Assembly: GCA_002794465.1 (NCBI GenBank) | Contig: MTSL01000169.1 | Span: 76,546 to 108,545, forward strand | Origin: Paramicrosporidium saccamoebae KSL3 | Lineage: Eukaryota > Fungi > Cryptomycota | DNA: 32,000 nt | Reading direction: 5' to 3' | Shown here: positions 1,690 through 25,753 of the stretch, piece by piece | How the letters are laid out: the number at the start of each line of letters is the position of its first letter | Position numbering within the stretch: position 1 is the stretch's first letter | The notes under the pieces: model-generated | What the model was told of the DNA's origin: nothing | Database searches by the model: none | What the model saw: only the letters and a program-made list of their open reading frames with translations | Translations under genes and position numbers: made by a program

Positions 1690-1889
1690 TGTGATGTAGA
1701 GGATTGATTGGTTGGGCATTTGAGGATAGTTCTCTAGTTTGGAGAAGACATAGTTGGAACAATCGACGAAAGATAATGAAATCTATACTTTTACCTTTTA
1801 GGATCGCTACTACGGCGGTTGAGAGGCCATCAAAGGGCATATAAATTTATAACAGACTTTCCTCGCCTTCCGAATAAAGAATGGTGACA
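1690..1889 (-). mobile_element. TGT...ACA insertion element, copy 4 (reverse orientation, divergent left part)
   Basis: Starts tgtgatgtagaggattgattggttgggcatttgagga, the reverse complement of the family right end. It also shares tagtt.ctctagtttggagaagac with copy 3 and ends ggtgaca. Flanked by TGAT at 1686-1689 and 1890-1893; absent from the paralogous TRF4 site. Confidence 0.85.
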
Positions 1890-2297
1890 TGATAGCAATG
1901 CCTTAATAGCTTGGGATCCAGAGTGATGATACCCCCTAGCAAAGAAGGCGCCTGCTGTGGATCATTATTTCATTTTCGGCCTGTTTCCTTTGGAGAACCT
2001 CCAATTCCTGTGTTACACACTGATGTCCACGATATCTGAATCGAAGTTGTGGCCGTAGAGCTCAGAGAATCACAAGACGAGAACTCAGGTTCTCATGAAC
2101 ACGGATGAGCCCCGCCTGGATGAGGGGATGCATTTGTAGGGTTATAAGACCCTTTGGTGCGATTCCTGATCCATAGATATACCAGCTCACACCCTCCCAT
2201 GTCATAGGACATTGGTGTGAGTTGGGGATTTGGGGACCGAGACGTAGCCAATTGGGGCGGTCACGAAACAACCTCGGCATATCGGATCAGCTCATAG

Positions 2298-2373
2298 CCA
2301 ATCAGTGACGCAGAATACCAAATGGACTGGGGATTTGGGTGGATACCCATGTTTGGGGAGCTTGTATAAATAA
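2298..2373 (+). promoter_or_regulatory. CCAAT box and TATA box of the 4-TM gene
   Basis: CCAAT at 2298-2302 and TATAAATAA at 2365-2373, about 30 nt before ATG 2402. Both are conserved in the decayed duplicate (CCAAT near 1152, TATAAAAG 1186-1193). Confidence 0.5.
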
Positions 2374-2401
2374 GGAGGGATTGCGTCAGAGTCTCACAAA
2401 C

Positions 2402-2839
2402 ATGCATTTAGTAGTCAACAAGTACGTATATTGGTTCTGTATCGTCAGCATGGTCGCCCTGGGGTCCATGTTTCTCATTGCCTCCTGGGAACAGCCGAAA
2501 GTATACACCTACCGAATGTTGTTCCATCCCGTTCTATACACTGTGCTGTCACTCGCCTTTTTCCTGCTGGCCGCCTCTAAAAAGAGCATCCGCTGCTGCT
2601 ACATAGCTGCCGGCCTGCAGCTAACAGCTATGATCTGCTACTTTATGTGCTACAACTACGGAGGCTCATACCATTACCCAGGCGAGGTCCCGTGGCTGCC
2701 TCCTGTTAACTTTTCGAAAATTGCAGTGGCCGTTCAAGCTCTCAACATTGCAGCCTTTGCCATGTCTGGGACCAAATTCTTGTTCGCATTGCTTCGGTGG
2801 GAGTCTACTGATGGCGTGATGGGTGTTTTTACATCATAA
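2402..2839 (+). CDS. Small orphan membrane protein, about 4 hydrophobic helices (145 aa)
   Basis: Open frame from ATG 2402 with four long hydrophobic stretches. It has a TATA box upstream and a paralogous pseudogene. No family recognised. Confidence 0.7.
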   Translation: MHLVVNKYVYWFCIVSMVALGSMFLIASWEQPKVYTYRMLFHPVLYTVLSLAFFLLAASKKSIRCCYIAAGLQLTAMICYFMCYNYGGSYHYPGEVPWLPPVNFSKIAVAVQALNIAAFAMSGTKFLFALLRWESTDGVMGVFTS

Positions 2840-2855
2840 TCAATTCATTTTCGGT

Positions 2856-4091
2856 TTATATATTTGCAGTCTGTTGTATATAGTAGCGATGTCTCAGCAG
2901 CTTGGGATCCAGAGTGATGATACTCCCTAACAAGGAAGGCATTGGCTGTGGATCATTTTTTCCCTTGTCGGCTTGCCTCCTCTGGAGAACCTCAAACTCC
3001 TGCATCGCACACCGCAACACATTAAACGCATGCTCAAAGCAATGCCTCACTGCCCCATAGGCAAATGAGCCCTTGGAAATGTCATTCTCCTCGGTTTGTG
3101 GATCCTCAATGCTGAGAAGATGCGGCTTGGCCTCTTGTAACCATCCACGTTCCTCTTTGTCATAATAGCTACCGTCCTTTTGCACACTAATGCCCACGAT
3201 ATCTGAATTAAAGTTGCGACCGTAGAGCTCAAAGAACTCCAGGACAAGGACTCCCAGGTTTTCATGAGCACGGATCAGCCCCGTCTGGACTAGTGGATGC
3301 ATTTGCAAGAATGAAATGACCAAGCACATTATGGAAAAGCTGCCCAATCCGCCATGGAAGACTTCGTTTAGCTCGCGCATATGGAGGAAATGTTTCATCA
3401 CCAACGTGAATGGCCGGATGGCAGACTGGGCCTTCATCTGTTTCTGCATAAACGTGGCCGCTTCCAAACCAGAGGTGACGTTAAATGAGACGTCAATTTC
3501 GAAATCGGTATTATGGTCTACATATTTGATGATTGGCACTCTGGCCTTTGTAATCACCTTGACCGTCTCGGGGATGGGAATTCCTGCCTTGAGTAACGCC
3601 TTTGCAAGCTTCTTGAGGGGAGGTTTAGTGTAGTCATCCAGCTGCAGATCTTGGTGCACCACGACGACATCCAAATCACTGCTTGGCAGGTAGAGTTGCG
3701 AATCAAAGCTGCCAAAAACCTGCACGGTGGCCTCTCTCCAAAGCGATTGCACCACTTCGGTTAGTCTTCGTACTGCTTCAGAACGACTGTAGCGCTCCTC
3801 CTCGGTGGGAGAGACGTAGTTTGCAAAGTCGACAATCTCTTGGTGGAGACGTTCAGTTGGATGAGTGCTGTAGCGTCGCTGACGGTCCATCCAAGGGACG
3901 TTGTATCGAAGCACGGATGTCACAGGTGCAGGTTTACCTCTTGGGCGCGTCTCTTTAGGCTTTTCCGGCTCCTCGAGTACTTCGACATCAAATTCAATAA
4001 ATTCAGCGTCCATGACTTCATAATGTATCGTGTTAGAGCGGTGCTGCTCTTGTATCCTTTGGAGCTCGTCTCTATCAATCTGAATATCCAT
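2856..4091 (-). CDS. TRF4: Non-canonical poly(A) polymerase Trf4/5 (TENT4/PAPD5-7 family, TRAMP)
   Basis: 411 aa: RLHQEIVDFANYVSP, nucleotidyltransferase VFGSFDSQLYLPSSDLDVVV, ARVPIIKY...IDVSFN, LNEVFHGGLGSFS, LSIEDPQTEENDISKGSF. Confidence 0.93.
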   Translation of the reverse strand: MDIQIDRDELQRIQEQHRSNTIHYEVMDAEFIEFDVEVLEEPEKPKETRPRGKPAPVTSVLRYNVPWMDRQRRYSTHPTERLHQEIVDFANYVSPTEEERYSRSEAVRRLTEVVQSLWREATVQVFGSFDSQLYLPSSDLDVVVVHQDLQLDDYTKPPLKKLAKALLKAGIPIPETVKVITKARVPIIKYVDHNTDFEIDVSFNVTSGLEAATFMQKQMKAQSAIRPFTLVMKHFLHMRELNEVFHGGLGSFSIMCLVISFLQMHPLVQTGLIRAHENLGVLVLEFFELYGRNFNSDIVGISVQKDGSYYDKEERGWLQEAKPHLLSIEDPQTEENDISKGSFAYGAVRHCFEHAFNVLRCAMQEFEVLQRRQADKGKNDPQPMPSLLGSIITLDPKLLRHRYYIQQTANI

Positions 4092-4244
4092 CCACCAGGG
4101 CTATCCAGACTGACGCGTAGTAGGGAAATCTTCATAGATTCTGGTACGGGACAATATACGTTTGTTATCAAGTGGTTAATTAAGGAGGTGTTCTTTCCCT
4201 CAAACCCCTCGCATTCCCAACACACACGTTACACAATTTAGACT

Positions 4245-5075
4245 TTATTTTAGTAGATCCTTGTCCGTCCGAAGGGCCTTTTCAAACCGATCAATGTCTT
4301 CTAGCTGTTCTACCGAGATACAATCTTCTAGCCGAAATGCTCCCTGCATCGTCCGTACTAATGCAGACATTGCTGCAGCCGAGTCTAGCATTGTACCAAT
4401 GTCGTGGATCACTGACCGGACATATGTTCCACTGCCACATTCCATGTCAATCTCAAACTCGGGTAATGCAAACTGCGTCAACTCAATTCGGCTGATATTT
4501 ATGGGACGCATTGGCAGTTCCAGTTCAGGCTGCATGTCCTTCTCCTCTGCCGGATCGCTGGCAAGAAGGGTCTTTTGGCGTTTTCGGGAAATGTCGTAGG
4601 CGCGTTTTCCATTTACCCGAAGTGCAGAAAAGGCAGGAGGCCGTTGCATGACATCTCCGGTAAACTTTTCCACCAACAGTTGGCGCACCTTTTCCTCGGT
4701 GACATGCTCAAAGGGCCTCTCATGGACCAAAACGCCTGTCGTGTCGTATGTATCGTAATGCACACCAAAGACACCTGTTGCACGATATCCCTTTTTGCAC
4801 CCCTTCAGAAAACCCTCCAACATTTTGCATCCTCCATTGAGGCCAACGACAAGTACACCAGTAGCCATCGGGTCGAGCGTCCCGCCATGCCCAATTTTCA
4901 TCTTGCGCTGCACTGCAATAGCTTGTGAACGGTTCATGTTGGCGTGTTTCTGCAACATCGTCTGTATTACATTCTTGACGCGATTCAAAGTGTCGTTGCT
5001 AGTCTCTCCAGCGGGCTTAAGCACTGCCAATACACCATTCAGTGACTGTACTCTTTTTACTATTGACCGCTCCAT
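4245..5075 (-). CDS. PUS4: tRNA pseudouridine-55 synthase (TruB/Pus4 family)
   Basis: NGVLAVLKPAG, KIGHGGTLDPMATGVLVVG with the catalytic Asp, QRPPAFSALRVNGKRAYD, CGSGTYVRSVIHDIG. Confidence 0.93.
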   Translation of the reverse strand: MERSIVKRVQSLNGVLAVLKPAGETSNDTLNRVKNVIQTMLQKHANMNRSQAIAVQRKMKIGHGGTLDPMATGVLVVGLNGGCKMLEGFLKGCKKGYRATGVFGVHYDTYDTTGVLVHERPFEHVTEEKVRQLLVEKFTGDVMQRPPAFSALRVNGKRAYDISRKRQKTLLASDPAEEKDMQPELELPMRPINISRIELTQFALPEFEIDMECGSGTYVRSVIHDIGTMLDSAAAMSALVRTMQGAFRLEDCISVEQLEDIDRFEKALRTDKDLLK

Positions 5076-5401
5076 TATTTCGTGCCCTGGTGAAGCGGTT
5101 CAGACCGTATCATCTAGTGTATTGACCCATTTATTATCACTTGAACAGTGTTTTTGTGAACGAGCGCAACCACAAGTTCTGTTAAATAGCATCTGTCCAC
5201 GATTGGCAACCCAAATAACAACCTGCGATCCATTCCCGTCGTATTGAGGATGGCGGCCTGTGAAAGCACTACATGCTTTAACAACACGAATTAGCCCATT
5301 CAACGGGCTATCCTGTGTACAACTGGATGATAAATCTCAGTGATAGATTATAAGATCCATGATTTATTGCCTATATGGGCTGGTTTTTACACAAAATACG
5401 T

Positions 5402-6179
5402 CTAATCTCGTCTTGGCAGTCTCACAGGAACTATCTCCGCCTCTGCGTCAGCCACTAGTCTCACTGTGATATTACGCACAACGCTCTCCGTTTGCTGTAT
5501 CCTTGTAGTCGGTCTATAATCTGGCCGCCTTGGCCTTATCTCTGTCATAAAGGAAGTTGGTCGCGCCCTCCAGTCTGACTGTCGTGAGCTGGCAGACGGC
5601 AATTCCATTGAAAATTCCGCGGGGGATTCCTTTTTCCATTGTCCCTCATCCAATGCACGGTTGATACTGTTTAGTGCTGGTGTACGTCCCTCTTGCCGTG
5701 ATGCATTGGGGTCGTATGGTAGTATTTGCTCTTTTTCGTACACGGACGGCTGGAATTCCTGTACCAAAGTATTTGGGGCAGACTGTGACACAGCTGCCTC
5801 ACTGTTACTCACCACATTACTTTCGCCATTTTGGGCAATATCCCAGCTGGTTGCTTCCAGGCGTCCGCACTCCATGAGACTTGGACTACCCCCGTAAGTT
5901 TCAAAGGGATCTTTGCTGTAGTCAATCTCATCGCCTTCGTCCGCCCACGACTGTCCCACAAGCTTTAATCGGTCTTCTAGCTCTTTTTGCTGGGCCTGGA
6001 TGCGGGCATTTTCTTCCTCCGCTGTTAATTGTCTCGGCTTGGCCTCCTCTCGACGCCAGGCTATCCATCTGATTAGCACACTCTACTACATATTATGTAC
6101 GTTGTGATAGTGCGGACAGTGGTAATTGTGACGCAAATGATGAACGTTCAGTCGAATTTTTGCGACGCGGTGGGTGCAT
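5402..6179 (-). CDS. Hypothetical, largely disordered protein (one modelled intron)
   Basis: Long minus ORF (coiled coil EEENARIQAQQKELEDRLKL, then SWADEGDEIDY). A 40-nt intron at 6061-6100 (GTACAT...CTAAT...ATAG) joins it in frame to ATG 6179 (MHPPRRKNS...SQPWRREEAKPR). The start model is inferred. Confidence 0.6.
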
Positions 6180-6222
6180 TGGGGGGACAGTCTGTCTGCC
6201 GGGCCTTATAGACGCAACAAGC

Positions 6223-6845
6223 ATGTTGGGGTGTATCGTTGCCGGGCGACCGGTATGCCAATAACTAGAGGCCTAACATGGTAGGTGCAGACAAATTTGC
6301 AGACCATTTCGCCAGGAAGGTTTCTATTTGTGCTTCCTGAACCAGCCACCATCAACCACATTGTAGTTTTTCTCACCGGAAGTGTTCAATTTGATGAGGG
6401 AACGGGTGCCTCGATTTACTGCAATTCGGATGTGGGTGCTGCACAGGGAACAGCATGGAAATTCCTGGGTGTTCTTACCAACGATAAGCCCAGTGCCGTA
6501 TTCAAAGTCTCTGGATTCTCCGAGGGAATTAATATGCTGGAGGTGGGCATTGCCATAGAGCCAATATCTACACTGGAACAGCTGCTAATGGAGAGTGAGC
6601 CTCGTTCGCAGTGTCTCGTTCCCGTGTCTCCCACAACTCTGCCCAATCCTCTCACAATTGCACAGCGCATAGGCGAAAACTTGTTTAACTATGTCACGTC
6701 CTTTACACGTATGGCAAGTCTATTAGAGCCAAGTTTGCAGGTTGTTCCACTAAAGACTGTGCAGGAGTGGTACAATGGCCTTATTCGAAAGGTCACTTCT
6801 GATCCGGATGGGTTTATGCGCCAAGTTGCCAGAACAGCTGTCTGA
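6223..6845 (+). CDS. OPI10: Hikeshi/Opi10 family Hsp70 nuclear import carrier
   Basis: Exon 1 MLGCIVAGRP, 32-nt intron 6253-6284 (GTATG...CTAAC...TAG), then VQTNLQ...FLFVLPEPATINHIVVFLTG...WKFLGVLTNDKPSAVFKV...NLFNYVTSF...EWY. Confidence 0.9.
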
Positions 6846-6873
6846 ACGCGGGTCATCTTTAGAAAAATTTCAA

Positions 6874-7003
6874 GATCTTTACTACTACACAAGAGTTTAA
6901 CTACAGATTACCTGATCGTTACTACTGCGAGAGTTAACTATAGACTACTTGGTCTTTACCACTACAGATCGAAAACACTCAATAAAGGATCATTACTACA
7001 ATA
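6874..7003 (+). repeat. Degenerate intergenic tandem repeat (about 37-40 nt unit, gatc.ttactact...ttaacta.aga)
   Basis: gatctttactactacacaagagtttaactacaga / gatcgttactactgcgagagttaactataga / ggtctttaccactacaga / gatcattactacaa. Confidence 0.55.
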
Positions 7004-7016
7004 TTGCTTAATCATC

Positions 7017-7926
7017 ATGATGGTATTACTTGGCGCTCCTCATACCTAATGTTTAGCGTCTCCGGGTAAAGGTTGCTGATGGGAGGAAGACTGAAATTGA
7101 ACTAGAAAAAGACGCAACTTGGGGAGATTTACTCACAGTGTTGCTACTGAAATTGGACGAGCAACCTGTCGATATATCCACAGGCTTTCCTCCTCAGCTT
7201 CTGACTCCAAATAATATGGAACAACCGTTGTCCGGGCTTGGAGTCCATTCTGGCGACACTCTCACCGTCACCACCAGTAATGGCGAAGCTGTTGTGGCTC
7301 CGACTCTGCTTAATGCAGCGCCCACCATGCTGTTGAGAGAGATGCCAGACGACAACAGCTGTCTCTTTAACACAATCGGGTACGTCCTCTGCTCATGTTC
7401 TCGCTCCTCAGCCAAGGAGCTACGCGAGTTGGCAGCTGCATTGGTCCTTTCCTCGCCCAATTACACAGAGGCAGTATTGGGGATGCCTCCAGAAAGATAC
7501 GCGGAATGGATTCGAGGTGACACACATTGGGGCGGGGGCATAGAGTTGGCCGTATTTGCGGGACACTTTGAGACAGAAATAGCCTCCATTGATGTAGGCA
7601 GCGGACGGGTGGATATATTCGGAGAGGGAAACGGCTATGCTCAACGCGTCTATGTACTTTACAGTGGAATACATTACGACGCACTTGCCATGGGTGTTCC
7701 CCATAAAGAATCGGAAGATTGCACAGTCTTTGCTCCCACCGAGGATAATGCACTGGTGCAGGCGATGCAAGTAGCCGAGACGGCGAGGCTGGAACACCGA
7801 TATACTGATCTCGCCAAATTCACTCTCCGGTGCGAACAATGTCGCCAGGCGCTTGTTGGGGAACGAGAAGCAGAGAAGCATGCATCCACCACAGGACACG
7901 CCAATTTCATTGAATACTCTGAATAA
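7017..7926 (+). CDS. OTU1: OTU-family deubiquitinase Otu1/YOD1 (UBX-like + OTU + C2H2 zinc finger)
   Basis: ATG ATG (7017/7020), 34-nt intron 7023-7056, then RLRVKVADG...TGFPPQ (UBL). Catalytic MPDDNSCLF, WGGGIEL, YSGIHYDAL; C-terminal LRCEQC...HASTTGHANF. Confidence 0.93.
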
Positions 7927-7961
7927 ACATGAAGCAAATGTAGTAGGGCGTGAAATCCGTT

Positions 7962-8206
7962 TGTCGCGTAGCGGGGATAATACCACAGACGGGAAGGGGG
8001 GTTGTCTACTGCTAATCCTAGAATCGTATGGATGCACATGTCGCGTAGTGGGGATAAATAGTATGTATACATGTCTTACTGTCCCCAAATACCCAGCAAA
8101 GCGATCCACTCTAGCACACAAATACGTCTCACTGTTCTCAAATACCCGACTAATCAATCCTCTGCCTCTACGTCAAATACCCAACTAATTGATCCTCTAC
8201 GCCACA
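7962..8206 (+). mobile_element. TGT...ACA insertion element, copy 1 (245 bp)
   Basis: TGTCGCGTAG...CTACGCCACA imperfect inverted ends; exact 4-bp TSD CGTT (7958-7961 / 8207-8210); about 96% identical to copy 3 over roughly 158 bp by hand count. Confidence 0.92.
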
Positions 8207-8212
8207 CGTTTA

Positions 8213-8656
8213 TTAGAGCCGCTTTGCCTTGGGAGGACGACACCCATTGAAAGGAACTCTTGTCGTGTCAATCACCTCTGTCACTACCAGTCCCAATCTC
8301 CTCAAATGACCTACTAGCACTCCCCTTGCCGGATTTAATCCTCTAAAATTCAGCCTCACACTCCGCACACCAAGCTCCTCCAGTCTCCTTCTTAGTGTAT
8401 CCAACATGGCCATGGCGGCTTTCGGAGAGGTCTTTTGAGATCCGGAAAAACCGGCAGTGCCTGAGGATAATTTGAAAATGTGCCTCCCGGGCACGGTGGA
8501 CACTGTAAGGAAAATGTTGTTGCGCAGACAATTTATCAGCACCGTCGGTGACAAGTCTCCTCCCACATGCGGTGTGGATGTAGCCGAGGGCTTCTTTACC
8601 ACTGTCGACGAAAAAAATCGGACCATTCCGCCCCAATGTCTGAACAAGCTCAGCAT
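8213..8656 (-). CDS. MRPS11: Mitochondrial ribosomal protein uS11m
   Basis: N-terminal presequence-like region, then NNIFLTVS...SSGTAGFSGSQKTSPKAA...VRLNFRG...IDTTRVPFNGCRPPKAKRL (uS11 signature). Confidence 0.9.
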   Translation of the reverse strand: MLSLFRHWGGMVRFFSSTVVKKPSATSTPHVGGDLSPTVLINCLRNNIFLTVSTVPGRHIFKLSSGTAGFSGSQKTSPKAAMAMLDTLRRRLEELGVRSVRLNFRGLNPARGVLVGHLRRLGLVVTEVIDTTRVPFNGCRPPKAKRL

Positions 8657-8753
8657 AACGGTTAATGAATTGTTTGTTACCCTCGGTTAGCTGTTGAATA
8701 AATTTTTCGAGATCCTGGAGCCCGGTCGTTTAATAGATTGTTTGCTATCCTAG

Positions 8754-8933
8754 TGTCGCGTAGTGGGGATAAATAGTATGGCCCAGTTTAGGCGGGAAGA
8801 AGGGGTTTGTTCCCTGCTAATACTAGAATAGTATGGATGCACACCTCATTGTCATCAAATACCCAAAAAAGCGATCCACTCTAGCACGCAAATACCCAAC
8901 TAATCAATCCTCTGCCTCTACCTCTACGTCACA
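8754..8933 (+). mobile_element. TGT...ACA insertion element, copy 2 (180 bp, internally shorter)
   Basis: TGTCGCGTAGTGGGGATAAATAGTATG...CTCTACGTCACA; exact TSD CTAG (8750-8753 / 8934-8937); shares aagcgatccactctagcac and aaatacccaactaatcaatcctctgcctctac with copy 1. Confidence 0.92.
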
Positions 8934-9080
8934 CTAGAGCTCGGTCGTTTAATTAATTGGCTGCTACCCTGGGGTTTGGTCGTTTGATGAATCGTTTGTT
9001 ACTTTAGGCCTCAGTTGTATAATGCATTTGACCGTCGCAGAATGGATTGTCTGTCAGCCTTGGTAAAGCTTATCGGGGGG

Positions 9081-12687: not shown

Positions 12688-12852
12688 TAGACCCGGCTGA
12701 TGATAAATTTACCTTTTAGGAAGGTCTACTGTTGGGGCTAATACGACGATCTAAAATTAGATTTGTCGAATAGATGGCCCAAATCAGCGTGCAATATGGA
12801 TAGCCTCTTGTCAGTATAGAATCTTATCGGCTAATCTGACCAATCATTGAGA

Positions 12853-13623: not shown

Positions 13624-13756
13624 AACTTTTGAGAGATTTGAAAGTATTTACTACAAACCCAATCTCGCCGAGTCCCACTTGTTTATGGATTAGGGAGAAA
13701 TCAGTATTATCCAACCGACCACATTTACTACAAATCTAAAAAAGAAATCAATTTTA

Positions 13757-14592: not shown

Positions 14593-14600
14593 AGTTTTTT

Positions 14601-15746
14601 TTATCTATAATATCTCGCTCTACCTTCTCTCGACCGCGATCGTGACCGTGACCGCGACTGCGATGTAGAATATCTCCTAGACCGATATGAGCGAGAATGG
14701 TAATGTTCACTAGTTCGATTTCGAGATTCTGATAGACGGTCTCGCGATCTAGAGGAGTGATCAGTCCGAGATTCTGCTGGACGGTCTCGTGATCCAGAGG
14801 AGTGATCATGTCGAGCTTCTGGTAGACGCTCCCTTGTCCCTGAAGAATAGTCATCTCGAGAACCCGATTGATAGTCTTGTGACGAGGAAGGATCCTGATC
14901 TCTTGACCCAGATGGACAGTCTGTTTTCCTCTCGACATTTAAAACTTTGGGCTGTGAATGCATCAAATCATCAGAAATTAGCGGGATATCAAAAACTACG
15001 TTCATCTCATAAACATTGCTCAACACTTGAGCACACTTGTCCATCTCCTCTTTCTCCACGTTAAAAACTTCGGCCCATTTATCCGGCAAGACCACCCCAC
15101 ACTCCTCAGCAGCCCAACTCACTGCTGCACAGGCTAAAACTGCGGGCTGCCAACACACATAGGCAACAGTGCGGAGTCCGTCGTTGGTCAAATTAATGGC
15201 ACGTTGTGCAAGACGGGGATCGTCGAGTTCAAGGGCATTCAGATAGTTGGCAAGAAGTCCTATGGGATGACGGGGCTGAACGTGGAATCCAAGCTCCCGC
15301 AAGACGCACATTTCGGCAGAGGTTGTTCTGTCCCTCCATTTGTAATATTCATCCGCCACATAGTCCATTATCCGTATTGGTCGCGCTCCCCGTATTTCCT
15401 GGTGTAACCAAAAGTAAATATTAACGACATCCCGGATGCGACGACAACATTCCTCCACCTTTCCAGCAATCAGCGTGCAGGCCATTGCTACATCAAAAAG
15501 TGGCAGCTTCTTGACCGACTGCTGGCAGTAGAACTGCTGAAGGAGGATCTGTCCTGTCATAATTCCCGACTGCGGCATTTTCAACAGTCGTCCAGCCCGC
15601 TGCACAAGGTGACTACCAATATATCTGTAGCGCGTCTCCTCCTCCCACCTCATATCTTCTTTTTGCGAGGGACTCTGTCCAGCCACGAAAAAGGCATTAT
15701 AGTCCACCAAGGGATTCAACCAGTCCACTCCCTCCAGCAGCGTCAT
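14601..15746 (-). CDS. CCNL: Cyclin L with C-terminal RS domain
   Basis: SPSQKED...EETRYRYIGSHLVQRAGRLLKMPQ...GQILLQQFY...VAMACTLIAGKVEE..RRIRDVVN...EMCVLRELGF..HP; SRSRSRSRS tail. Confidence 0.88.
   Translation of the reverse strand: MTLLEGVDWLNPLVDYNAFFVAGQSPSQKEDMRWEEETRYRYIGSHLVQRAGRLLKMPQSGIMTGQILLQQFYCQQSVKKLPLFDVAMACTLIAGKVEECCRRIRDVVNIYFWLHQEIRGARPIRIMDYVADEYYKWRDRTTSAEMCVLRELGFHVQPRHPIGLLANYLNALELDDPRLAQRAINLTNDGLRTVAYVCWQPAVLACAAVSWAAEECGVVLPDKWAEVFNVEKEEMDKCAQVLSNVYEMNVVFDIPLISDDLMHSQPKVLNVERKTDCPSGSRDQDPSSSQDYQSGSRDDYSSGTRERLPEARHDHSSGSRDRPAESRTDHSSRSRDRLSESRNRTSEHYHSRSYRSRRYSTSQSRSRSRSRSREGRARYYR
14725..14830 (-). repeat. 48-bp (16-aa) coding tandem repeat in the cyclin L tail
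   Basis: gacggtctcgcgatctagaggagtgatca / gacggtctcgtgatccagaggagtgatca; protein (T/H)DHSS(G/R)SRDR(P/L)xE. Confidence 0.75.
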
Positions 15747-16008
15747 TTAACAATTTATCGTCAATTTCCCATAAGTGGGATACATTGCTTACGACTGCAG
15801 GCCATAAGCGCCGAGCTAATACTGAACAGAGTAGATGGTACATTTAGACAGCAGGGATGGGGGGTCTTGATTACAGACCTCACAAAAAGTCACTTTATTA
15901 AAAAACGTACTCCTTCTATAAGTGGCCACTTTCAGCACATCGAATTGGGCTTATGGGATAGATATCTTGATGGGGCCACCAATAGTGAGCAGATATTGTT
16001 GTAGAGTA

Positions 16009-16371: not shown

Positions 16372-16447
16372 GATGTTAACGGAGATATGCGATCAAGAGC
16401 TTTATATTAGTGGCGCAGTCTACATCCCAATCCGGCATATCTTGGAT

Positions 16448-16738
16448 CTAGCATAGGCCTTCCCGCGAATTTGAAATAATGCTTGTGGACTGAATTTTCT
16501 GTTCTGCATGGTTGAGTAGTTGTGAGAGTTGTCTGTCAAGCTCGACAGTGGTGAGTTGGTCGATGGGAGTGGAAAAGAGGTCGTCAGACTGACTGTCTCC
16601 ATCTGATAATCCACTGCTATCATCGTCTGCAGGAACCATTTCCGTGACAAAGAGCTCTTCTCTTTTAGCAGCACCCTCCACTTCGGAAAGACCAAAGCAG
16701 CAAAATAAGCCTATGAAGCGCGTCAACACTGAATTCAT
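16448..16738 (-). CDS. Hypothetical small acidic protein; 3' end uncertain
   Basis: MNSVLTRFIGLFCCFGL... followed by an acidic/Ser tract and a short amphipathic helix (LDRQLSQLLNHAEQKI). It may be spliced. Confidence 0.4.
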   Translation of the reverse strand: MNSVLTRFIGLFCCFGLSEVEGAAKREELFVTEMVPADDDSSGLSDGDSQSDDLFSTPIDQLTTVELDRQLSQLLNHAEQKIQSTSIISNSREGLC

Positions 16739-16883
16739 GAGGTGCCACAAATAAATATAGCCAATTTATGTACGACCCGGTTATCAAGGCGACTCGAAAA
16801 TTTATAAACAAATCTATACATGGTGTAGCAATGTAGTAAAGGTGCTTCTTGTGGTGCTCACTGGACTTTTATGACTGCCTCCT

Positions 16884-18076
16884 CTAACCTTGTTTAAGCA
16901 TGGCCGTCCTGAATGAAGGTAAAGAATAGTCGTCTTCAACAAAACTCAAAGAACCGTCATCGTCCTTGTCATCTGTAGTGGTACCATCTTCATCCTTGTC
17001 ATCCGTGGTGGTGCCATCTTCATCCTCGTCGTCTGTAGTGGTACTATCGTCATCATTCTCGGATAGTTCATGCTCGAGTTTATCTAATGTCTCTGAAAAG
17101 TTTAGTTTTCCTTCTTCCTCCGCTTCGGTAGCTTCAAAATCCTCAAAATTTTCCAGAGTATCAGCAACTGTTTTTCCAAATTCGCAAAGAAATTCTCTCA
17201 TTTCAGAAGAGTCGGTAATTCGGCTCAATTTGCCATCAGCATTATCATCCAGCTTGGATCTCTTGGTACCGATAGTCGTCCGTTTCACATTTTCAATCAT
17301 CTCTTCTGAGAATCCGTTCATTTCTAATGATACAGAAACGCTGTTCCAGCCGATGACAGGCGCTTTAGGTCTTCCAACTCGAAACTGCTCCTCTACGACT
17401 AGCACATCCTGCACAACTTTTCTTGTCCATTCAATCAATATTCTCAAAAATTCACGCGCTGCCTGAACCGTTACCATGGCTTCAGAACTTCCAGTCAGCT
17501 CGGCAGCACGTTTCTGTAATCTATCAGGACGAAGTATCAGATGCACAAAAGGGTCCTTCCGTCTATTTTTTTGCAGACTACGAACATCTGCCTCTTCTTT
17601 TTTACAAAGCAGCTCTGCATTTTCAATCTCCAACTCCAGGTCGTGTTCATTAGTAACTAGCGCCTCCTCCAGCCGTGGTGTCATATCAAATCCGGCATTA
17701 TGCACTACAAGTTGTAAATAGAAATCTGATCATTACAATAGCGGCTCACGTCATCTAAAATAGCACAACGATATGCAGCATCGGTGGGCCGATACGGTCG
17801 ATAATCTTTCCTAATGTGGACCCTCTCGTTGACGGCCTGCGCATATCGGTCATAGTCCCCCCGACACGCGTACTTTTGCATGGCCTCGCCGGTGTATCGA
17901 ATCTTTTGTAGACCGTAGCTCTGTGGGTGCGAAAATAGTCTTTTAATGCATTCATGCACCCGTCGTGTGTCTCTCACCCTGCCACCGGGAACTTTGCGTT
18001 TTCCTTCCAGTCGTTCCAGACTGTCCAGTTCCCTGTCATCCAGTTCAATAGGTGTCTCTGCCGCCGGTGGAATCAT
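16884..18076 (-). CDS. Hypothetical protein of about 386 aa with acidic tail, possibly Rrn5-like (Pol I UAF)
   Basis: ORFs 17705-18076 and 16884-17705 are joined in frame by a 32-nt intron at 17705-17736 (GTAATG...TTGTAG). The segment AAREFLRILIEWTRKVVQDVL...VSVSLEMNG resembles a histone-fold-like region; the Rrn5 call is weak. Confidence 0.65.
16955..17054 (-). repeat. 3 x 30-bp coding repeat (DG/DSTTTDD(K/E)DE)
   Basis: DDSTTTDDEDEDGTTTDDKDEDGTTTDDKDDDG in the acidic tail. Confidence 0.9.
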
Positions 18077-18958
18077 CTAAAGGAAATTGTATTAAGCATA
18101 TCGTCTACCTGTCACCTGTCGCGTAGTAAATAATCACCACGGACTTTTTACTGCCGAGTAACTCACCGTAATATGTAAACATGAGGACAGTAATGTTTTG
18201 TGGTGGGAGTATTATCACGGCGTCAATATAACTGGGCGACAGGGAATTAACAGCTAATACGGATTCACCAGCATAGTGTCCACTACATTGGCGAGTCTAT
18301 ATTCCAAATATTGGAAAACACTCAGCACACAGGTAAATATTCCACTATTTCACAATAGTACAAGTAGTTTTATTAACGAGTCAGGTTCCGAGCATTCCAG
18401 CATTGATGAATGGTCTTGCGCTTATTCCTCCGGTGTGTCGGTTTATGCAGGGACGACGTTGAATTTGATCGCTTGAGTTGGCTATCGAGAAAACTACCCC
18501 ACGGACATTTACAGTTATCCAGCCAATTACACACAATGGACATGCTATCTACAGCTGGCCCAATATAGGAGCCATGCTCGGCTATCCGAAACAGGTGGAT
18601 AAGCTCCTCCATTTCGTTTGTCCCAAGAGCATCAACACTTGGCCGACGTGTCAGAGACAGAAAACTGTTACTATTAGAATCCGCAATGACAAGGGATTCA
18701 GTACCGGAAGTGGTGCAGCCAGGCATGACAAGACTAGGCGGCACGTTCCAGCAAAAGTTTGTGGGTACCCCCAACAAAAAGTTGCATTAATTACCAAATG
18801 ACGCCTCATCATGTGATTGGCCAGAAAAGTCATTATTACAAAGTTATCACGGCCAAGGAGATCAAGGAGCTTTGATCCGTTATATAGTCTCGTAGTAGTA
18901 ATAAACTCTTTATCAGGGCGCCCAATCCATCATACCCTTGCATCACGACACAGGTTAT

Positions 18959-21859
18959 TTAGTTTAAATTTGCAATAATCTCGGCATAGCCTTGACGAAT
19001 CTGTCGTTCATAATCTTGTTTGCCCTCAATCAAGCGGCCGCAGAGGGACAAGCTAAGCTCGCAGAATTTCTTTGCCCAATCCATCTCACCAATTCTAATG
19101 CCATTAGTTTTGGCTATATAAAGTACTCGGTCACGGACTGACTAACGTTAAAAGCAGTGATTATTAGCCATAGAATTTCATCTTGAGGGTACTACAAAGA
19201 TTAAAATTATCAATTGCACGCTACGGAATCGGCCATCTGAACAATGTCTTTGCCTTGAGAAATCAATTCAAACGTTTCTGCAAAATCTTCATCGATCAAT
19301 GTACAGATGATCATTCCCCTAAAAAGCATGGAGAATCTCCTAACACCATCGGCGTCAGTGTCCTTTAGATTCGACTCTGAAAGCTTTTGAAGCAAAACCA
19401 AGTATACTAGAACAAATGTCAAATGCAGGCCGTACTACCTTCAGATGGTATTTTGTGAGTGGTATGAATTAGAAAATGGACAATGGATTCTGCAGAAAGA
19501 GCTCCAATTTCCTACAGTCGTACTCGCCGCTACTTGGATTACCGTAACAATTGACTTGTAGGTCTGGTCACCCTTTAGGATCAGCAAAAGAGCTTCAGTG
19601 ACGCGGATCAGTGATTCGAGGCTGCTTCGTATCCTGTGCGCAGAGCTGTGGCCTCCGGCCTTCATGCGCTTTGTAGGCGCCAGTGGGCGCATCATTTCAA
19701 TGTCATCCAGAAAGTCCTTGCCATCATTCAAGGCATGCTCCACAGCTTTGATCAAATCAGAGTCGCAATATTTGCAATGAGCGAAAGCCTCCATAAGGAT
19801 TGAAGCGAACATGATTCGTTTTTCATCATCATTACATTTCTTGGCTAGACATAGTGCCTTTGACGCAATTGCAATACATCTTTCGTGTTTCCCGGCATTG
19901 TACAAGTCAATGGCACAATTCCAAATTGAATCTAGCGCACTAGTTGACAATTTACTCAGCCCAACAACTACATGTCAGCAGTCTGTGATGAAAAGTACTC
20001 TTGGGTAAATACTTTTCAATATACTCAACACCATCAGGAAGCATTCCCGACATTGAAGCAATGTTTTCAAGACAAATGCATCGCAGCTCATCTGATAGTC
20101 CTGATGCACTTAGCGCATCCTCGAGCGCTTTAATCGATTCGCCAGGAAATTGGCATTCAAAAAAGATTCGACTAATTTCTAGTAGCCACGCAGCTGAATA
20201 TTGTGTTCGGTGCTTCTGGTAAACAGCCGATGCTACGCCATGGAATATAATCATAAGGGTACCTTGGTGTCTACGTCCCGCGCTGATGGCAATCTCAAAG
20301 ATTATCAAGGAACCCAGCTCTGTATCTTCCACGTCTCTGGCAACCTTTTCAGCTTCGTCCACCAAACTCATTTTTAAGAGGCACTGGGCCTTGAATCTAC
20401 TGATTAAACCCCGATTGCTATTTCGCTACACTCGGTATCGTTGGATGTTAGAGGAATCGTCAGAAAGTCTTAGTAGCACATCCAGAAGACTTTGAGCGAG
20501 ACTATATTTTGATTCCTACTAAATGACAAGATATTTACGTCAGTACTTTGAAACACTGTCGTGCCTTTTTGTACAGAATCGCTTCCAATTCCCAAATCTT
20601 TTTGATCCCTTTGATCCGGAACTCGTGACACTGCATCATATCCACCAGCATTGGCACTCCCTGGGCTGCTTGGATGGCCCCCAAAATTGTTGCTTTCAGA
20701 ATAACATATGACGAAAATTCAGCATCGTTGACCTTTGACAATGTCGATCGACCCTCAAAGCAGCTAAAAAGGTTCAATAGAATGTCTGGCCTAATTGTTT
20801 AGTCAATTTGACAGTTCTACTCGGTTGTCGCCTTCAACAGAGTGATAACTTGTATAAGCTCTTTTACTGTTAAATCAGAGGGAAGAGTTCCACTTGTGGA
20901 ATCCACCTGTCTAGCCGTGTTGATAACCCTTCCGCAAGGTCGATCAGAGATTGAGGGAAAAGCTTCAAAAAGCGCGCGGCAATCGTCTGGAGTTTTAAGT
21001 AAGCTCTTTTGCAGCATGTATTCAAGCGCAGATTCCACCAGATCGACCGCCATGTCTTGAGTAAATACAGTTCCGCATGTCACCAAAGCCGAAAGCACGG
21101 CCCCTGCGTCGTTTGTGATGACAGAGTTCAAGACTTGTTTAATGGCTCCTTTATCGAGTTCGCCATTAATTTTCTCCAAAGTCAACTTTACATCCTCAGA
21201 GTGTCCAAGATTCTAAAAGTAACTTTTCGGTCCCAATAGAAACCATCAACAGCTCTGCTTCATATGCCACCTGCATAACTTGAGCTGATTTCACTTTTTG
21301 CGCCGCACTGAGCATGCCGAGACGCGATTTTAACTAGCGGTGTAAGTATTGAACGGAATGCTTACCATGAAAAGTTCTTGTAGATAGAGGGTACAGTAGC
21401 CAGGCTCCGGTAGTTCCAGAAATGCTTTTGATGCAAGCGCGCACATATGCATGGCATCTAGCATTCCTAGTCAATGTTAGTGTCACAACTGCCAAGTAAT
21501 TACCATCATCGTCAAGATACTCCAATGACGTCCCTTTGAGTAAGAGAATGGCTAGCTCACGACCTAAACAATGATCCTACTGACATTCCTCTACCATATG
21601 CAGCAATCTTTTGTGTTATCATGGATTTTTGAGAGTTTCCGTTACCAAGGTGCACCATGTGGTTCCATAATTGAATTGCTTCAATAAAAAATGGAGTGTG
21701 AGCCATACCTTCACTGCGGCAGTCACCAGGCTGTAAATCACCTCTTGAGATGCACTCTGTCAATGTTGCCTTGGCATCATGGATGGCAGTCAGACATTCT
21801 TGACTATAGTCGGCAACTTTGAGATGCGCAAATAGACTTGCAAGCTTTGTCTCCAGCAT
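18959..21859 (-). CDS. TEX11: Meiotic ZMM TPR protein Zip4/Spo22/TEX11 (about 13 mini-introns, about 826 aa)
   Basis: Seven ORF-track fragments join through GT-AG introns of 30-40 nt into one frame (2901 - 420 = 2481 nt = 827 codons). N-terminus EAIQLWN...RELAILLL...ASKAFLE. C-terminus YPQDEILWLIITAFNVSQSVTEIGEMDWAKKFCELSL...DYERQIRQGY aligns without gaps to the TEX11/ZIP4 C-terminal YPxxEILWL..xxWN...AEKWCxLAL...YExQM motif as recalled. Confidence 0.8.
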
Positions 21860-21874
21860 CAATGTCGAATTTAT

Positions 21875-22699
21875 TCATGCGTTAATGTGTAATACGAGTT
21901 TTCTTCCATAAATGGAAACGGCCGCATAAAGGTCTTCATTATCGCCGACTTGGATTGAATCCCCGTCCTTGTCTTTGAACGTCAGAGAAAGGCTCGAGTC
22001 TTCAGGTATGCCCGACTTTTCCTTAATAAGTCTATCAACTAGCTCAAAGGAACAGCCCGGATCATACTCGAAAGCAAGAATGTCTCCACGACACTTTACT
22101 TTTACACGGATCTGCGACTGTGCTATGCTCAGAGACCTTTTGCTTGAATTTGTCATCGACAAGGACGGTACATTACTGTGGAGCGATACACGATCTAAGA
22201 GAGAATTGGTTCTGCTTGGCGTGCTAGGAATTTCTGTCATTCTAGGGATCTCTGAGTGGGAGTCATGCTCTGTTGGTAGAAAGAAATCAAGAACCACTCG
22301 TGTTCTACTAATATATGGTGGCAAGATGAGCAGATCGCGACAGTACTTGTCCACTGCTTGCCGCAGCTTTAGAACCATTTTGGACGGACTTGACAGAATC
22401 ATCAAGACTCGCTTTGTTGCTGGACAGGAGGGCAGTATCCGCCGATGCCCACGACGTCCAGCCTCTACTGGAAAAATGACTTTGAGAGATTCAGAGAGCT
22501 TTTGAAAGGAGGAGAGGGATTTGCGGAGATGCCAGGAGCCAGTAAGATTCTCGATGAGCAACTCAAGATGGGGATTGTTTCGGTCTGTAATATCGGCTTG
22601 GAGGGTTCTGGCCTTGGATATCTGGCATCCAGCCACCACGGAAGACATGTGGGACCTCCACCTCTCCAATTCTTGATGTGCTGCTATCTTGTCTTGCAT
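21875..22699 (-). CDS. PX + PB1 domain protein, Bem1/Scd2-like C-terminal half
   Basis: PX: FPVEAG...RILP...VDKYCRDLLILPPYISRTRVVLDFF. PB1: IRVKVKCRGDILAF...FKDKDGDSIQVGDNEDL...KLVLHI. No SH3 domain is visible. Confidence 0.8.
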   Translation of the reverse strand: MQDKIAAHQELERWRSHMSSVVAGCQISKARTLQADITDRNNPHLELLIENLTGSWHLRKSLSSFQKLSESLKVIFPVEAGRRGHRRILPSCPATKRVLMILSSPSKMVLKLRQAVDKYCRDLLILPPYISRTRVVLDFFLPTEHDSHSEIPRMTEIPSTPSRTNSLLDRVSLHSNVPSLSMTNSSKRSLSIAQSQIRVKVKCRGDILAFEYDPGCSFELVDRLIKEKSGIPEDSSLSLTFKDKDGDSIQVGDNEDLYAAVSIYGRKLVLHINA

Positions 22700-22798
22700 C
22701 CGAACAGAATGCCGCTAGCGTGTCATGCAGGCAAATAGACCCACAGAATCACAGCATGACAGACGTACTGGTAATTTCTACCGCCGTTTCATTAGAAC

Positions 22799-22882
22799 GG
22801 CAAGATGGTCGAGTGGTCTAAGACGTTAGATTCAGGTTCTAATCTCAGAAATGGGGCAAGGGTTCGAATCCCTTTCTTGTCA
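22799..22882 (+). tRNA. tRNA-Leu(CAG), intronless
   Basis: Acceptor GGCAAGA/TCTTGTC plus discriminator A; D arm with TGGTCGAGTGG; anticodon arm TTAGA-TTCAGGT-TCTAA; long variable arm TCTCA-GAAA-TGGGG; T arm AAGGG-TTCGAAT-CCCTT. Confidence 0.96.
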
Positions 22883-22886
22883 ATAC

Positions 22887-22890
22887 TTTT
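22887..22890 (+). terminator. RNA polymerase III T-tract terminator
   Basis: TTTT four nt after the tRNA discriminator base. Confidence 0.6.
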
Positions 22891-23021
22891 GCAGTGCCTG
22901 TCTAGTTGAATTTTGTCTTATTTGTATCTCCAATGTAATAGCTATGATTTTACAAAAGCTGCGAGTAGTCTACAAATTAGCAGAGTATCAACAAAGGTGA
23001 TCTCTGGGTGCCGGGGATGGG

Positions 23022-23867
23022 ATGACGATGGAGGCGAACCCTCTAGAGCTCGCTCTTCAGCAGCTTGCCAAGACCATGGGAGTAAATCTCCCTGGAGGCG
23101 AGCAACCTGTAAAAACTGAACAAAATATACAGAAGCCAGCAGCCGCCGAGGCTGCAAATGTAGTCTCGGAAGAAGAAGGAGAACTGCTCGAGGAGCCAGA
23201 CCCTTTTGTCAACCGAAAACGGGGGCAGCTCGAAGGGTCAGACCCTTCTGTCAACCGAAAACGAGACCAGAGACGGTCGCCCAGAAAGTCAGCGCCAACA
23301 TTTACGGGCGAAGTCGACGCAGAGAGTCTTCTCCGCGGCCCAAAAACCCCCAAGATGAAGCGTCCCCGGGTTGACAAAGTTGTACGACAAGAAAAAAAGG
23401 AACGCCCCAAGGTGCCTTGTCGGTATTGGATGGAAGGGAAATGCAGCAAAGGTGATGAGTGTACCTTTTCACACGCTAGCCGCCCAAACCGATCTGTGGA
23501 GGATGCCAAGAGTGAAGATGTGTGTCGTTTCCACATTGCGGGAAACTGTTTGAAGGGAGACAACTGCATGTATAGTCACGATCTGTCCAAAGTCCCATGC
23601 AAATTCTTCCATGTGAAGGGGGACTGCGGAGCGGGTGCATCATGTAGATTTTCACACGGTGCTATTAGTGAACAGGAGAGACATTTGTTGTTTGTAGAAA
23701 TGATGGGGACGAGAGATCCACGATTACCGCAGTCTAATGCGCCTGCCCGGCCGATCTCTCCGCCTCCATCACGGCCCGCTGTCACAATCGCTGTCCTGAC
23801 CAGGAATCCGACCATGATTCTAGATCCCGAGGTACAGAAATACAATCCATTTGGATCGCCATTTTAG
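23022..23867 (+). CDS. Triple CCCH zinc-finger protein (ZC3H4/6/8-like)
   Basis: CRYWMEGKCSKGDECTFSH, CRFHIAGNCLKGDNCMYSH, CKFFHVKGDCGAGASCRFSH. It also has a 42-bp internal duplication (DPFVNRKR / DPSVNRKR). The start could be 23028. Confidence 0.85.
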   Translation: MTMEANPLELALQQLAKTMGVNLPGGEQPVKTEQNIQKPAAAEAANVVSEEEGELLEEPDPFVNRKRGQLEGSDPSVNRKRDQRRSPRKSAPTFTGEVDAESLLRGPKTPKMKRPRVDKVVRQEKKERPKVPCRYWMEGKCSKGDECTFSHASRPNRSVEDAKSEDVCRFHIAGNCLKGDNCMYSHDLSKVPCKFFHVKGDCGAGASCRFSHGAISEQERHLLFVEMMGTRDPRLPQSNAPARPISPPPSRPAVTIAVLTRNPTMILDPEVQKYNPFGSPF

Positions 23868-23937
23868 AATTTGTATAATAAAACTAATCATACCGCACAA
23901 ATGGATCAATACTGGCCCGTTGTAACCCTGGCTCATA

Positions 23938-25470
23938 ATGGACGACCTATTCCGAAAACTCTCTTCGGGAGCCCGTTTTTCGCAGAAATCGTATCGCGCC
24001 GAGAAGCGCCGCGATCTAAAACTGCAGAATAGCGACAAGAAACACACGACGCAAGAGAGGGACGACGAACTCGACTTTTTCGGATCCCAGACGGCCACGA
24101 CAGAGCCGGCTGCGGCTCGGACAACGGAACCTATTGGGAAACGGCCCATGTTCAAGACCGAAACAGATATGCATGTATTCCGGAAGGAACAAGAGATAAA
24201 AGTGTATGGTGAAGATGTACCTCGGCCAATACGCAAGTTTCGTGACCTTTGTCGACCAGACTATGGCGTCCCTGAGGAGATGGTGGAAGCACTCGTTGCG
24301 GCTGGACTGAAAAAGCCCACGCCAGTGCAGACACAGGCCACTACTGTGCTCCTTGCTGGCCGAGATGCCTTTATCACTGCTCCCACAGGATCGGGGAAGA
24401 CCCTCGTCTTTGTCTTGGCGATACTCTCGCGACTGCTTAAGACTGAAGAACGGAGTGGAAAGATTGAGGCAGTGATAATATCGCCTACAAGAGAGCTGGC
24501 TGCGCAGATACGAAACGAGTTTCGTCGTTTCACACCCACACTGGCTGGTAAGCCCGTCATAGGCAGTGTTCTGCTCAATAAGGCCGTCCTGAATTCGTGG
24601 CAAAGCAAGCCCCCAAAGACCTTTCCCTCGATCCTAATTACTACGCCGAAGCGACTGGTGCATGGAATTGAGAAAAAGATTATTGACTTGTCGCTGACAA
24701 GTCAACTAATGTTAGATGAGGCAGACAAGCTGCTGGATTTGGGACTAATGGAGCAGATTGACGATATCTTGGCAGCCTGCACCTACAAGGATGGACCGAT
24801 ACAAAAGGCGCTGTTTAGTGCAACAATCCCCACCGGAGTGGAGGAGCTGGCCCGATCGTTTATGAATGCGGATCCGGTAAGAGTGACCGTGGGCACTTTG
24901 AATGGAGCAACCAAGACGATCAAACAGAAACTCGTCTATGTGGGTCAGGAAGAGGGAAAGCTGATGGCTATCCGGCAGATGCTTGCCAAAGGTGTGGAGC
25001 CCCCCGTTATTATCTTTACCGAGACGATTGATCGTGCGCAAGAGCTGTTCCGCGAGTTAGTGCAGCACGGAATTAACGCAGACATTATCCATTCGTCGCG
25101 TAGTCAGACGGACCGTGAACGCGTAATCACACAATTCCGGAACGGTCGCATTTGGTTCCTAATCACCACAGAACTGCTTGCACGGGGTCTCGACTTTCCG
25201 GCCGTGTCCTGCGTCATCAACTACGACTTTCCTCTCAGCACAGCCAGTTACATCCATCGCATTGGTCGCACTGGTCGGGCCGGCAAGCGTGGCAAGGCAA
25301 TTACATTCTTTACGCGTGAAGACGCGGATGCTCTGCGCATTGTGGCCAATGTGATGCGTCAGTCGGGCTGCGAGGTGCCGGAATGGATGCTGCAGCTGGA
25401 CCGCAAAAAGACCAAAGACATTTTATATAATAGAAAGCGCAAGAACCGAGAGGAGGAAGTAGTAGTGTAA
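23938..25470 (+). CDS. ROK1: DEAD-box RNA helicase Rok1/DDX52
   Basis: MDDLFRKLSSGARF N-terminus typical of DDX52; PTPVQ, APTGSGKT, SPTRELAAQI, LDEADKL, FSAT, LLARGLDF, YIHRIGRTGRAG. Confidence 0.94.
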   Translation: MDDLFRKLSSGARFSQKSYRAEKRRDLKLQNSDKKHTTQERDDELDFFGSQTATTEPAAARTTEPIGKRPMFKTETDMHVFRKEQEIKVYGEDVPRPIRKFRDLCRPDYGVPEEMVEALVAAGLKKPTPVQTQATTVLLAGRDAFITAPTGSGKTLVFVLAILSRLLKTEERSGKIEAVIISPTRELAAQIRNEFRRFTPTLAGKPVIGSVLLNKAVLNSWQSKPPKTFPSILITTPKRLVHGIEKKIIDLSLTSQLMLDEADKLLDLGLMEQIDDILAACTYKDGPIQKALFSATIPTGVEELARSFMNADPVRVTVGTLNGATKTIKQKLVYVGQEEGKLMAIRQMLAKGVEPPVIIFTETIDRAQELFRELVQHGINADIIHSSRSQTDRERVITQFRNGRIWFLITTELLARGLDFPAVSCVINYDFPLSTASYIHRIGRTGRAGKRGKAITFFTREDADALRIVANVMRQSGCEVPEWMLQLDRKKTKDILYNRKRKNREEEVVV

Positions 25471-25497
25471 GCGATATAATAGAATTGTGGTTATGAT

Positions 25498-25753
25498 CGT
25501 CGCGTAGTGGGGGTAAATAGTATGGACGGGAAGGGGGATTGTTCACTGCTAATCCTAGAATAGTATGGATGCACATGTCGCGTAGTGGGGATAAATAGTA
25601 TGCATACATGTCTTACTGTCCCCAAATACCCAGCAAAGCGATCCACTCTAGCACACAAATACGTCTCACTGTCCTCAAATACCCAGCAACTCGGTCTTCT
25701 CCAAACTAGGGAACTATTTCCAAAGGCCATGTTAATCAATCTTCTACGTCACA
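25498..25753 (+). mobile_element. TGT...ACA insertion element, copy 3 (256 bp; first base C instead of T)
   Basis: CGTCGCGTAGTGGGGGTAAATAGTATG...TTCTACGTCACA; exact TSD TGAT (25494-25497 / 25754-25757). Confidence 0.92.

Follow-up and report, generated by a model that had tools for sequence, protein, structure and literature searches.

Paramicrosporidium saccamoebae, an intranuclear parasite of amoebae belonging to the Rozellomycota (PMC5701793), offers a reduced genome of key importance close to the base of Microsporidia and Rozellomycota. The stretch of strain KSL3 analyzed here, hereafter called the window, consists of the 32 kb of contig MTSL01000169.1 (181,930 bp; assembly GCA_002794465.1, genome accession MTSL00000000) that extend from record position 76546 to 108545, and it contains four copies (c1 to c4) of a short, dispersed, non-coding element bounded by TGT...ACA-type ends and by exact 4-bp target-site duplications. 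These copies are probably solo long terminal repeats (LTRs) of a Gypsy-like (Metaviridae-type) LTR retrotransposon. Elements of this kind are ordinary and well known; the family itself is not yet annotated in P. saccamoebae, and our search of the literature found neither a description of it nor one of other transposons in Paramicrosporidium. Its members are dispersed and bear the signatures of an integrase, which shows that mobile elements have been active in the P. saccamoebae lineage. The value of the family is a local one and concerns annotation and the history of transposons in parasites with reduced genomes.

Termini and Target-Site Duplications

The four copies and their duplications were established by direct reading. 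Copy c1 (positions 1690-1889 of the window, minus strand, 200 nt), which represents a divergent subfamily, lies between two TGAT motifs (1686-1689 and 1890-1893). The long variant c2 (7962-8206, plus strand, 245 nt) is flanked by CGTT (7958-7961 and 8207-8210), the short basic form c3 (8754-8933, plus strand, 180 nt) by CTAG (8750-8753 and 8934-8937), and the mosaic copy c4 (25498-25753, plus strand, 256 nt) by TGAT (25494-25497 and 25754-25757). An earlier note on this DNA had described four elements with exactly these repeats, and each of the four was found where it had been placed. When the copies are compared with one another, their similarity breaks off precisely at the TGT and ACA termini, beyond which the flanks are unrelated. 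Given that a 4-bp match arises by chance once in 256 per copy, four exact duplications at ends defined by homology are not fortuitous. The consistent length of the duplication is 4 bp, since a 5-bp duplication could fit c1 and c2 only. The broader claim that these sequences form a mobile-element family with TG...CA-type ends and 4-bp duplications is thus borne out by the ends, the duplications and the borders of homology. In addition, the 27-nt motif that opens the 5′ end was found four times with at most three mismatches, vs. no occurrence in 100 shuffled sequences.

The contig was also read beyond the window, from record position 61624 to 116222 (54.6 kb), by extension through the proteins encoded at the window edges; 7.8 kb of the extension were reached through a neighboring metalloprotease (PSACC_02623 is named among the neighbors). 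Two further copies were found in this way. Copy c5 (window-equivalent positions 32308-32581, minus strand, 274 nt) lies just past the right edge and is the most diverged of all, with an extra 5′ segment of ~143 nt that opens with a family-like terminus. Copy c6 (positions 4099-4276 of locus L008, minus strand, 178 nt) is of the c3 type and lies 10.6 kb to the left of the window. Self-comparison identified the family as the sole dispersed repeat in the 54.6 kb, of which the six copies occupy 1,333 bp (2.4%); c1 to c4 account for 881 bp (2.75%) of the window.

LTR retrotransposons in general have TG...CA ends and duplicate 4 to 6 bp of their target (PMC12440569). Among the six copies, five begin with TG and all end with CA, and a duplication within this range, exactly 4 bp long, abuts the termini of all four window copies. 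The exception at the 5′ end is c4, which had been credited with a TGT start and actually begins with CGT, a C replacing the T. More specifically, TGTCG or TGTCA is found at the 5′ ends (CGTCG in c4) and, after reverse complementation, TGTGA or TGTGG at the 3′ ends, so that both termini of the six copies conform to TGTNR, the 5′ end of c4 differing in its first base. TGTNR is the pattern of most Gypsy LTRs and is also that of Ginger transposons, i.e., it is not exclusive to either (Bao et al., PMC2836005).

The insertion of c1 can be compared with its own empty site. An old tandem segmental duplication, with ~80% identity overall (68-82% piecewise), relates positions 1409-2136 to positions 2596-3305; the left duplicate holds c1 plus one additional TGAT, and the right duplicate is uninterrupted at the corresponding point (2876-2890). 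The duplicated segment consists of the 3′ part of a Cid1-type nucleotidyltransferase gene, whose intact copy lies at 2856-4091 on the minus strand, and of the region downstream; the left duplicate, with c1, is a truncated fragment from which ~175 bp are missing. An AGTATAT-type microsatellite (~4 units, 1653-1686) adjoins c1 and is represented by a single unit at the paralogous site.

Several additional sequences resemble the family in part. A 20-nt match to the 3′ terminus occurs on the plus strand at 4069-4088 of locus L008, 10 nt from c6 and inverted with respect to it, tail to tail. The 180 nt that end at this match align with c1 with a marginal score (z = 4.0; equaled by 2 of 300 shuffles), and the site may represent an older copy that was truncated, or a rearrangement. 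Weak matches reported by nhmmer at 15916-16005 and 26931-27010 (E of about 1e-3 and 0.05, respectively) have no termini and were discarded as copies. Elsewhere, scans for the exact 5′ motif, 3′ motif or core 20-mer returned no hit in metagenome, viral and prokaryotic genome contigs, and nhmmer, run with every copy as query against syntenic or related loci of uncultured relatives (62 kb from L001-L004, L009, and L010), found none at E ≤ 10.

Structure and Diversity of the Copies

The basic form of the element, 178 to 180 nt long, is that of c3 and c6 (89.8% identity) and has no internal repeat. The longer copies differ from it by a duplication in their 5′ part: in c2, the 27-nt 5′ terminal motif recurs after the first 77 nt (8039-8065), ahead of the remainder of the element, and c4 carries the same internal duplication, with its motif copy at 25576-25602 after the first 77-78 nt. 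Copy c5 likewise bears an internal second copy of the motif. These 5′ internal duplications give the family a size range of 178-274 nt. The composite form shared by c2 and c4 is present twice, within a different target-site duplication each time, and it was therefore propagated as a unit rather than formed locally.

The closest pair in the window is c2 and c4, which are 93.0% identical (173 of 186 bp) and differ by 11 transitions and 2 transversions; c3 is 71-81% identical to these two, piecewise. The likeness of c4 to c2 is confined to its positions 2-187, and positions 190-256 resemble instead the 3′ end of c1 (79.1%), which makes c4 a mosaic. It is only over these 3′ 67 nt that c1, which reads TGTCACC...ACATCACA in element orientation, is homologous to the rest of the family; its 5′ 133 nt are unrelated. 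The earlier statement that c1 and c3 are about 96% identical across their core is therefore wrong, the close pair being c2 and c4. Across subfamilies, conservation is strongest over the last 25-35 nt of the 3′ end.

The two halves of the element differ markedly in base composition. In c2, c3, c4, and c6, the 5′ half contains 30-35% G, and the 3′ half contains 32-40% C and 8-12% G; a short A/C-rich motif is repeated two to four times in each of these copies. The imperfect inverted ends ascribed to the first three copies exist in c2 and c3, where 9 to 10 of the first 12 nt match. Fewer match in the other copies, down to 4 of 12 in c1, and the weaker similarity said to extend to about 23 nt was not recovered, as ungapped comparison of the ends revealed no match past ~13 nt in any copy (inverted ends of ~10-13 nt). 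In c1, the terminal inverted repeat thus does not go past TGT.A, and yet this copy lies within an exact duplication.

As the earlier note had it, the elements are non-coding: their longest open frames vary in strand and frame from one copy to the next and have no Pfam match. ARAGORN detected no transfer RNA (tRNA) within the elements, and a permissive Rfam scan of positions 7900-9000, which covers c2 and c3 only, returned nothing. Folding of the elements as single-stranded DNA gave structures no better than those of 200 shuffles (z = +0.45, +0.63, and +0.37 for c1, c2, and c3, respectively).

Insertion Sites

All copies lie between complete open reading frames (ORFs), often close to stop codons. 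Copy c2 occupies a convergent spacer, between the stop codon of an OTU1-like gene (7926) and that of the mitoribosomal S11 gene (8213), from which it is separated by only 2 nt; without c2 and its duplication, this spacer would measure 37 nt. Copy c3 lies upstream of S11, 97 nt from its start codon, and downstream of IML1, 147 nt from its stop codon, in a spacer that spans 424 bp here vs. 40 bp in a syntenic contig of an uncultured relative. Three units of a ~35-nt tandem repeat (8715-9010) occur in this IML1-S11 spacer, and c3 stands exactly at a unit boundary. Copy c4 begins 23 nt past the stop codon of ROK1. The family fills spacers that are otherwise ~40 bp long and makes up 2.4-2.8% of this 32-55-kb stretch.

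The 54.6 kb contain a single tRNA gene (22799-22882), at a distance of 2.6 kb from c4, the copy closest to it. Placement of the kind seen in tRNA-targeting Ty3-like elements, a few bp upstream of genes transcribed by RNA polymerase III, was thus not observed in the 54.6 kb, and in this respect the family differs from tRNA-associated Ty3/Gypsy LTRs.

Origin of the Family

The reading of the copies as solo LTRs draws on ends and duplications that follow the LTR rule, the absence of features proper to Ginger transposons, the end structure of c1, and the distribution of variability between the 5′ and 3′ parts. It also draws on the empty site of c1, the shortness of the inverted ends, folds no better than those of shuffled sequences, the strand asymmetry, the lack of a conserved frame and of Pfam matches, the composite and mosaic copies, the fact that no other dispersed repeat occurs in the 54.6 kb, and the short S11-IML1 spacer of the relative. 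Copy c1 carries particular weight. Its target is exactly duplicated and its ends are TGT...ACA, and yet it has no inverted repeat, which points to an integrase that recognizes only a few bases at the tips of two unlike LTR ends, and not to a transposase that binds symmetrical repeats. In the proposed mechanism, a retroviral-type DDE integrase would join the TGT...ACA ends of reverse-transcribed DNA to short intergenic spacers at a cut staggered by 4 bp, the repair of which would generate the 4-bp duplication. Recombination between the two LTRs of an inserted element would subsequently delete the internal coding part and leave one LTR within its duplication.

Several variants of the element have been propagated, namely the basic form (c3 and c6), the long form (c2 and c4), the mosaic c4, and c1 with its unrelated 5′ two-thirds. 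Variability and duplications in the 5′ part, conservation of the 3′ part and the occurrence of mosaics correspond to the usual behavior of the unique 3′ (U3) region vs. the repeat-unique 5′ (R-U5) region of LTRs and to template switching in retroelements. A fast-changing U3 and a conserved 3′ part, combined with template switching during reverse transcription, would account for the variants observed here. The family further resembles Ty3/Gypsy solo LTRs in its TGTNR-type TG...CA ends, 4-bp duplication, short imperfect inverted repeat, length of ~180-270 nt, lack of coding capacity and intergenic location in a compact genome. The Gypsy label is tentative, as an LTR alone does not discriminate between Gypsy, Copia, and BEL.

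Five observations weigh against this interpretation. First, no internal region, primer-binding site, reverse transcriptase or integrase was found beside the copies or in the 54.6 kb. Second, in the same 54.6 kb no two copies pair around a retroelement body. No full-length element, paired LTRs, or gag-pol genes were thus seen there, unlike what is typical of Ty3/Gypsy. Third, a non-autonomous DNA element mobilized by an integrase-like transposase could have the same ends and duplication as an LTR, and these features by themselves do not tell the two apart. Fourth, the flanks of c5 (ATGG/CGGG) and c6 (CCGT/GCTT) agree at two of four positions only. Fifth, the genome paper reports a repeat content of 0.53% genome-wide, mostly simple and low-complexity repeats, and does not mention transposons (PMC5701793), a figure with which the earlier extrapolation to 125 copies per Mb sits badly. 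The earlier note had seen no autonomous partner in the window, and the Pfam match lists extend this absence to the 54.6 kb. The two neighbors c2 and c3 were considered as the LTR pair of one element and rejected, each having its own duplication and the intervening 547 bp being the host S11 gene.

Recent activity of the family had also been proposed. It is not supported: the closest copies diverge by 7-10%, no near-identical pair exists, and this divergence, together with the imperfect flanks of c5 and c6, argues for old rather than recent activity. The evidence points to past activity and to moderately old insertions.

The earlier note had left the choice open between solo LTRs and miniature inverted-repeat transposable elements (MITEs) derived from a Ginger-like transposon. 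According to the second of these accounts, which we regard as unlikely, the copies would be non-autonomous MITE-like DNA transposons whose cut-and-paste movement depends on a DDE transposase, of Ginger type or otherwise integrase-like, with its gene at another place in the genome. Gypsy and Ginger1 and Ginger2/TDD do have TGTNR termini and a 4-bp duplication in common, which imply retroviral-type integrase chemistry. The imperfect inverted match of c2 and c3, the presence of short non-coding elements in intergenic spacers, and the 54.6 kb devoid of retroelement genes also agree with a DNA transposon, and multiple copies with target-site duplications near genes are typical of MITEs. However, Ginger transposons have terminal inverted repeats of 40-270 bp and insert into CCGG/CCGT (Ginger1) or RTATAY (Ginger2) (PMC2836005), whereas the inverted ends of the family do not exceed 13 nt and its four exact sites are TGAT, CGTT, CTAG, and TGAT. 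It is on these two points, inverted-repeat length and target preference, that the Ginger-derived MITE fails and the solo LTR is favored. Copy c1, duplicated at its target without an inverted repeat, is equally hard to accommodate, as are the strongly dissimilar base compositions of the two halves, the range of sizes (178-274 nt) with its 5′ duplications, and the mosaic copy. Unlike MITEs, the family has no substantial inverted repeats or fold-back potential (z of +0.4 to +0.6), its lengths are heterogeneous, and one of its members has an unrelated 5′ two-thirds. A hairpin MITE in particular was rejected on the folds of c1, c2, and c3, which remain at the level of shuffled sequences.

It is quite unlikely that the copies, instead of being remnants, are complete non-autonomous LTR-type retroelements, such as miniatures comparable to terminal-repeat retrotransposons in miniature (TRIMs) or large retrotransposon derivatives (LARDs), or a terminal-motif element copied in trans. 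LTR-type ends and duplications without coding capacity are features of TRIMs and LARDs, the second 5′ terminal motif inside c2, c4, and c5 also speaks for this reading, and the composite form has reached at least two loci. Yet the repeat within c2 and c4 is a copy of ~27 nt of the 5′ end only and is missing at the 3′ end, so that there is no terminal direct-repeat pair around an internal segment, i.e., no LTR-internal-LTR layout; the basic form (c3 and c6) has no internal repeat at all, and no stretch resembling a primer-binding site or a polypurine tract was noticed on reading by eye only.

There is a slim chance that the elements are self-standing, minimal integrase substrates of ~180-270 bp, LTR-like with respect to their TGTNR termini only and inserted in trans by a Gypsy/Ginger-type integrase. 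If so, they would be intermediates between LTRs and Ginger inverted repeats in a 7-Mb genome otherwise without retrotransposons; they would also supply most of the spacer DNA where present and shape transcript ends amid ~40-bp spacers. A short interspersed nuclear element or other tRNA-derived retroposon was rejected, given the lack of a tRNA in the elements, of an Rfam match in c2 and c3, and of a tail, and the duplication fixed at 4 bp, although the 5′ end bears a loose likeness to the box motifs of RNA polymerase III genes.

Finally, it is very improbable that the copies are introner-like elements or host regulatory cassettes, retained in very short spacers for a role as intron, terminator or promoter: GenBank gene models do cross c2, c4, c5, and c6 as though these were intronic, and c2 and c4 do lie 2-23 nt from stop codons in spacers otherwise of ~37 nt, but the crossing models merge unrelated neighbors that are separate genes in relatives (Hikeshi with OTU1, ROK1 with Nfu), overwrite an unannotated S11 gene and resemble annotation artefacts, while the elements stand between complete ORFs, never inside them, and the 62 kb searched in relatives contain none.

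Gene Annotation and Neighboring Features

Beyond their interpretation as solo LTRs, the copies coincide with public gene models that fuse neighboring genes and miss S11, and masking the family could improve the annotation. The window is dense in mostly intron-poor genes, which encode a Cid1-type nucleotidyltransferase, TruB, Hikeshi, OTU1, mitoribosomal S11, IML1, SBDS, a cyclin, a PX-PB1 protein, a tRNA(CAG), a zf-CCCH protein, ROK1, Nfu, and a DUF6818 protein. A public model of 491 aa (6223-8690, plus strand) merges the Hikeshi-like and OTU1-like genes, crosses c2 and ends antisense to S11. The S11 ORF itself (8213-8656, minus strand, 147 aa; Pfam Ribosomal_S11, 4.7e-18) is not among the called genes, and Hikeshi, OTU1, and S11 are three separate genes in a relative. 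Similarly, a public model of 978 aa (23938-27845, plus strand) fuses ROK1, a DEAD-box helicase, to Nfu/NifU across c4 and a Thr-rich ORF; in relatives, ROK1 (507 aa) and Nfu (247 aa) are separate. The fused models at c2 and c4 look like annotation artefacts. Comparable fusions of 685 aa and 781 aa, the latter joining a nucleoside transporter to an arrestin-like protein, extend across c5 and c6, respectively.

Relatives are represented in public assemblies and metagenomes by loci L003 (GCA_047514055.1, JBCAWG010000236.1), L009 (Logan SRR21707646), L001/L002, and L010, with 55-72% protein identity to the window. Two gene orders are common to these loci and to the window, i.e., cyclin, zf-CCCH, ROK1, Nfu, and DUF6818 on the one hand, and TruB, Hikeshi, OTU1, S11, IML1, and SBDS on the other hand. 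Paramicrosporidium-like organisms therefore occur in several public datasets.

The tRNA gene at 22799-22882 (plus strand) is 84 nt long (Rfam, 58 bits); its anticodon is CAG, its variable arm is long, and ARAGORN assigns it to leucine by the anticodon only. Nfu is flanked by two genes for Thr-rich, predicted secreted proteins (25915-26880 and 27902-28696, both on the plus strand), which have N-terminal hydrophobic leaders and belong to no Pfam family. The two proteins have their composition and a 30-nt DNA repeat in common, and their similarity at the protein level is not significant (BLASTP E of 0.78). In-frame tandem repeats were also found in three other genes of the window, with units of 45 nt in the cyclin-like gene (14722-14856), 30 nt in a gene for an acidic protein (16954-17060), and 42 nt in the zf-CCCH gene (23186-23269).

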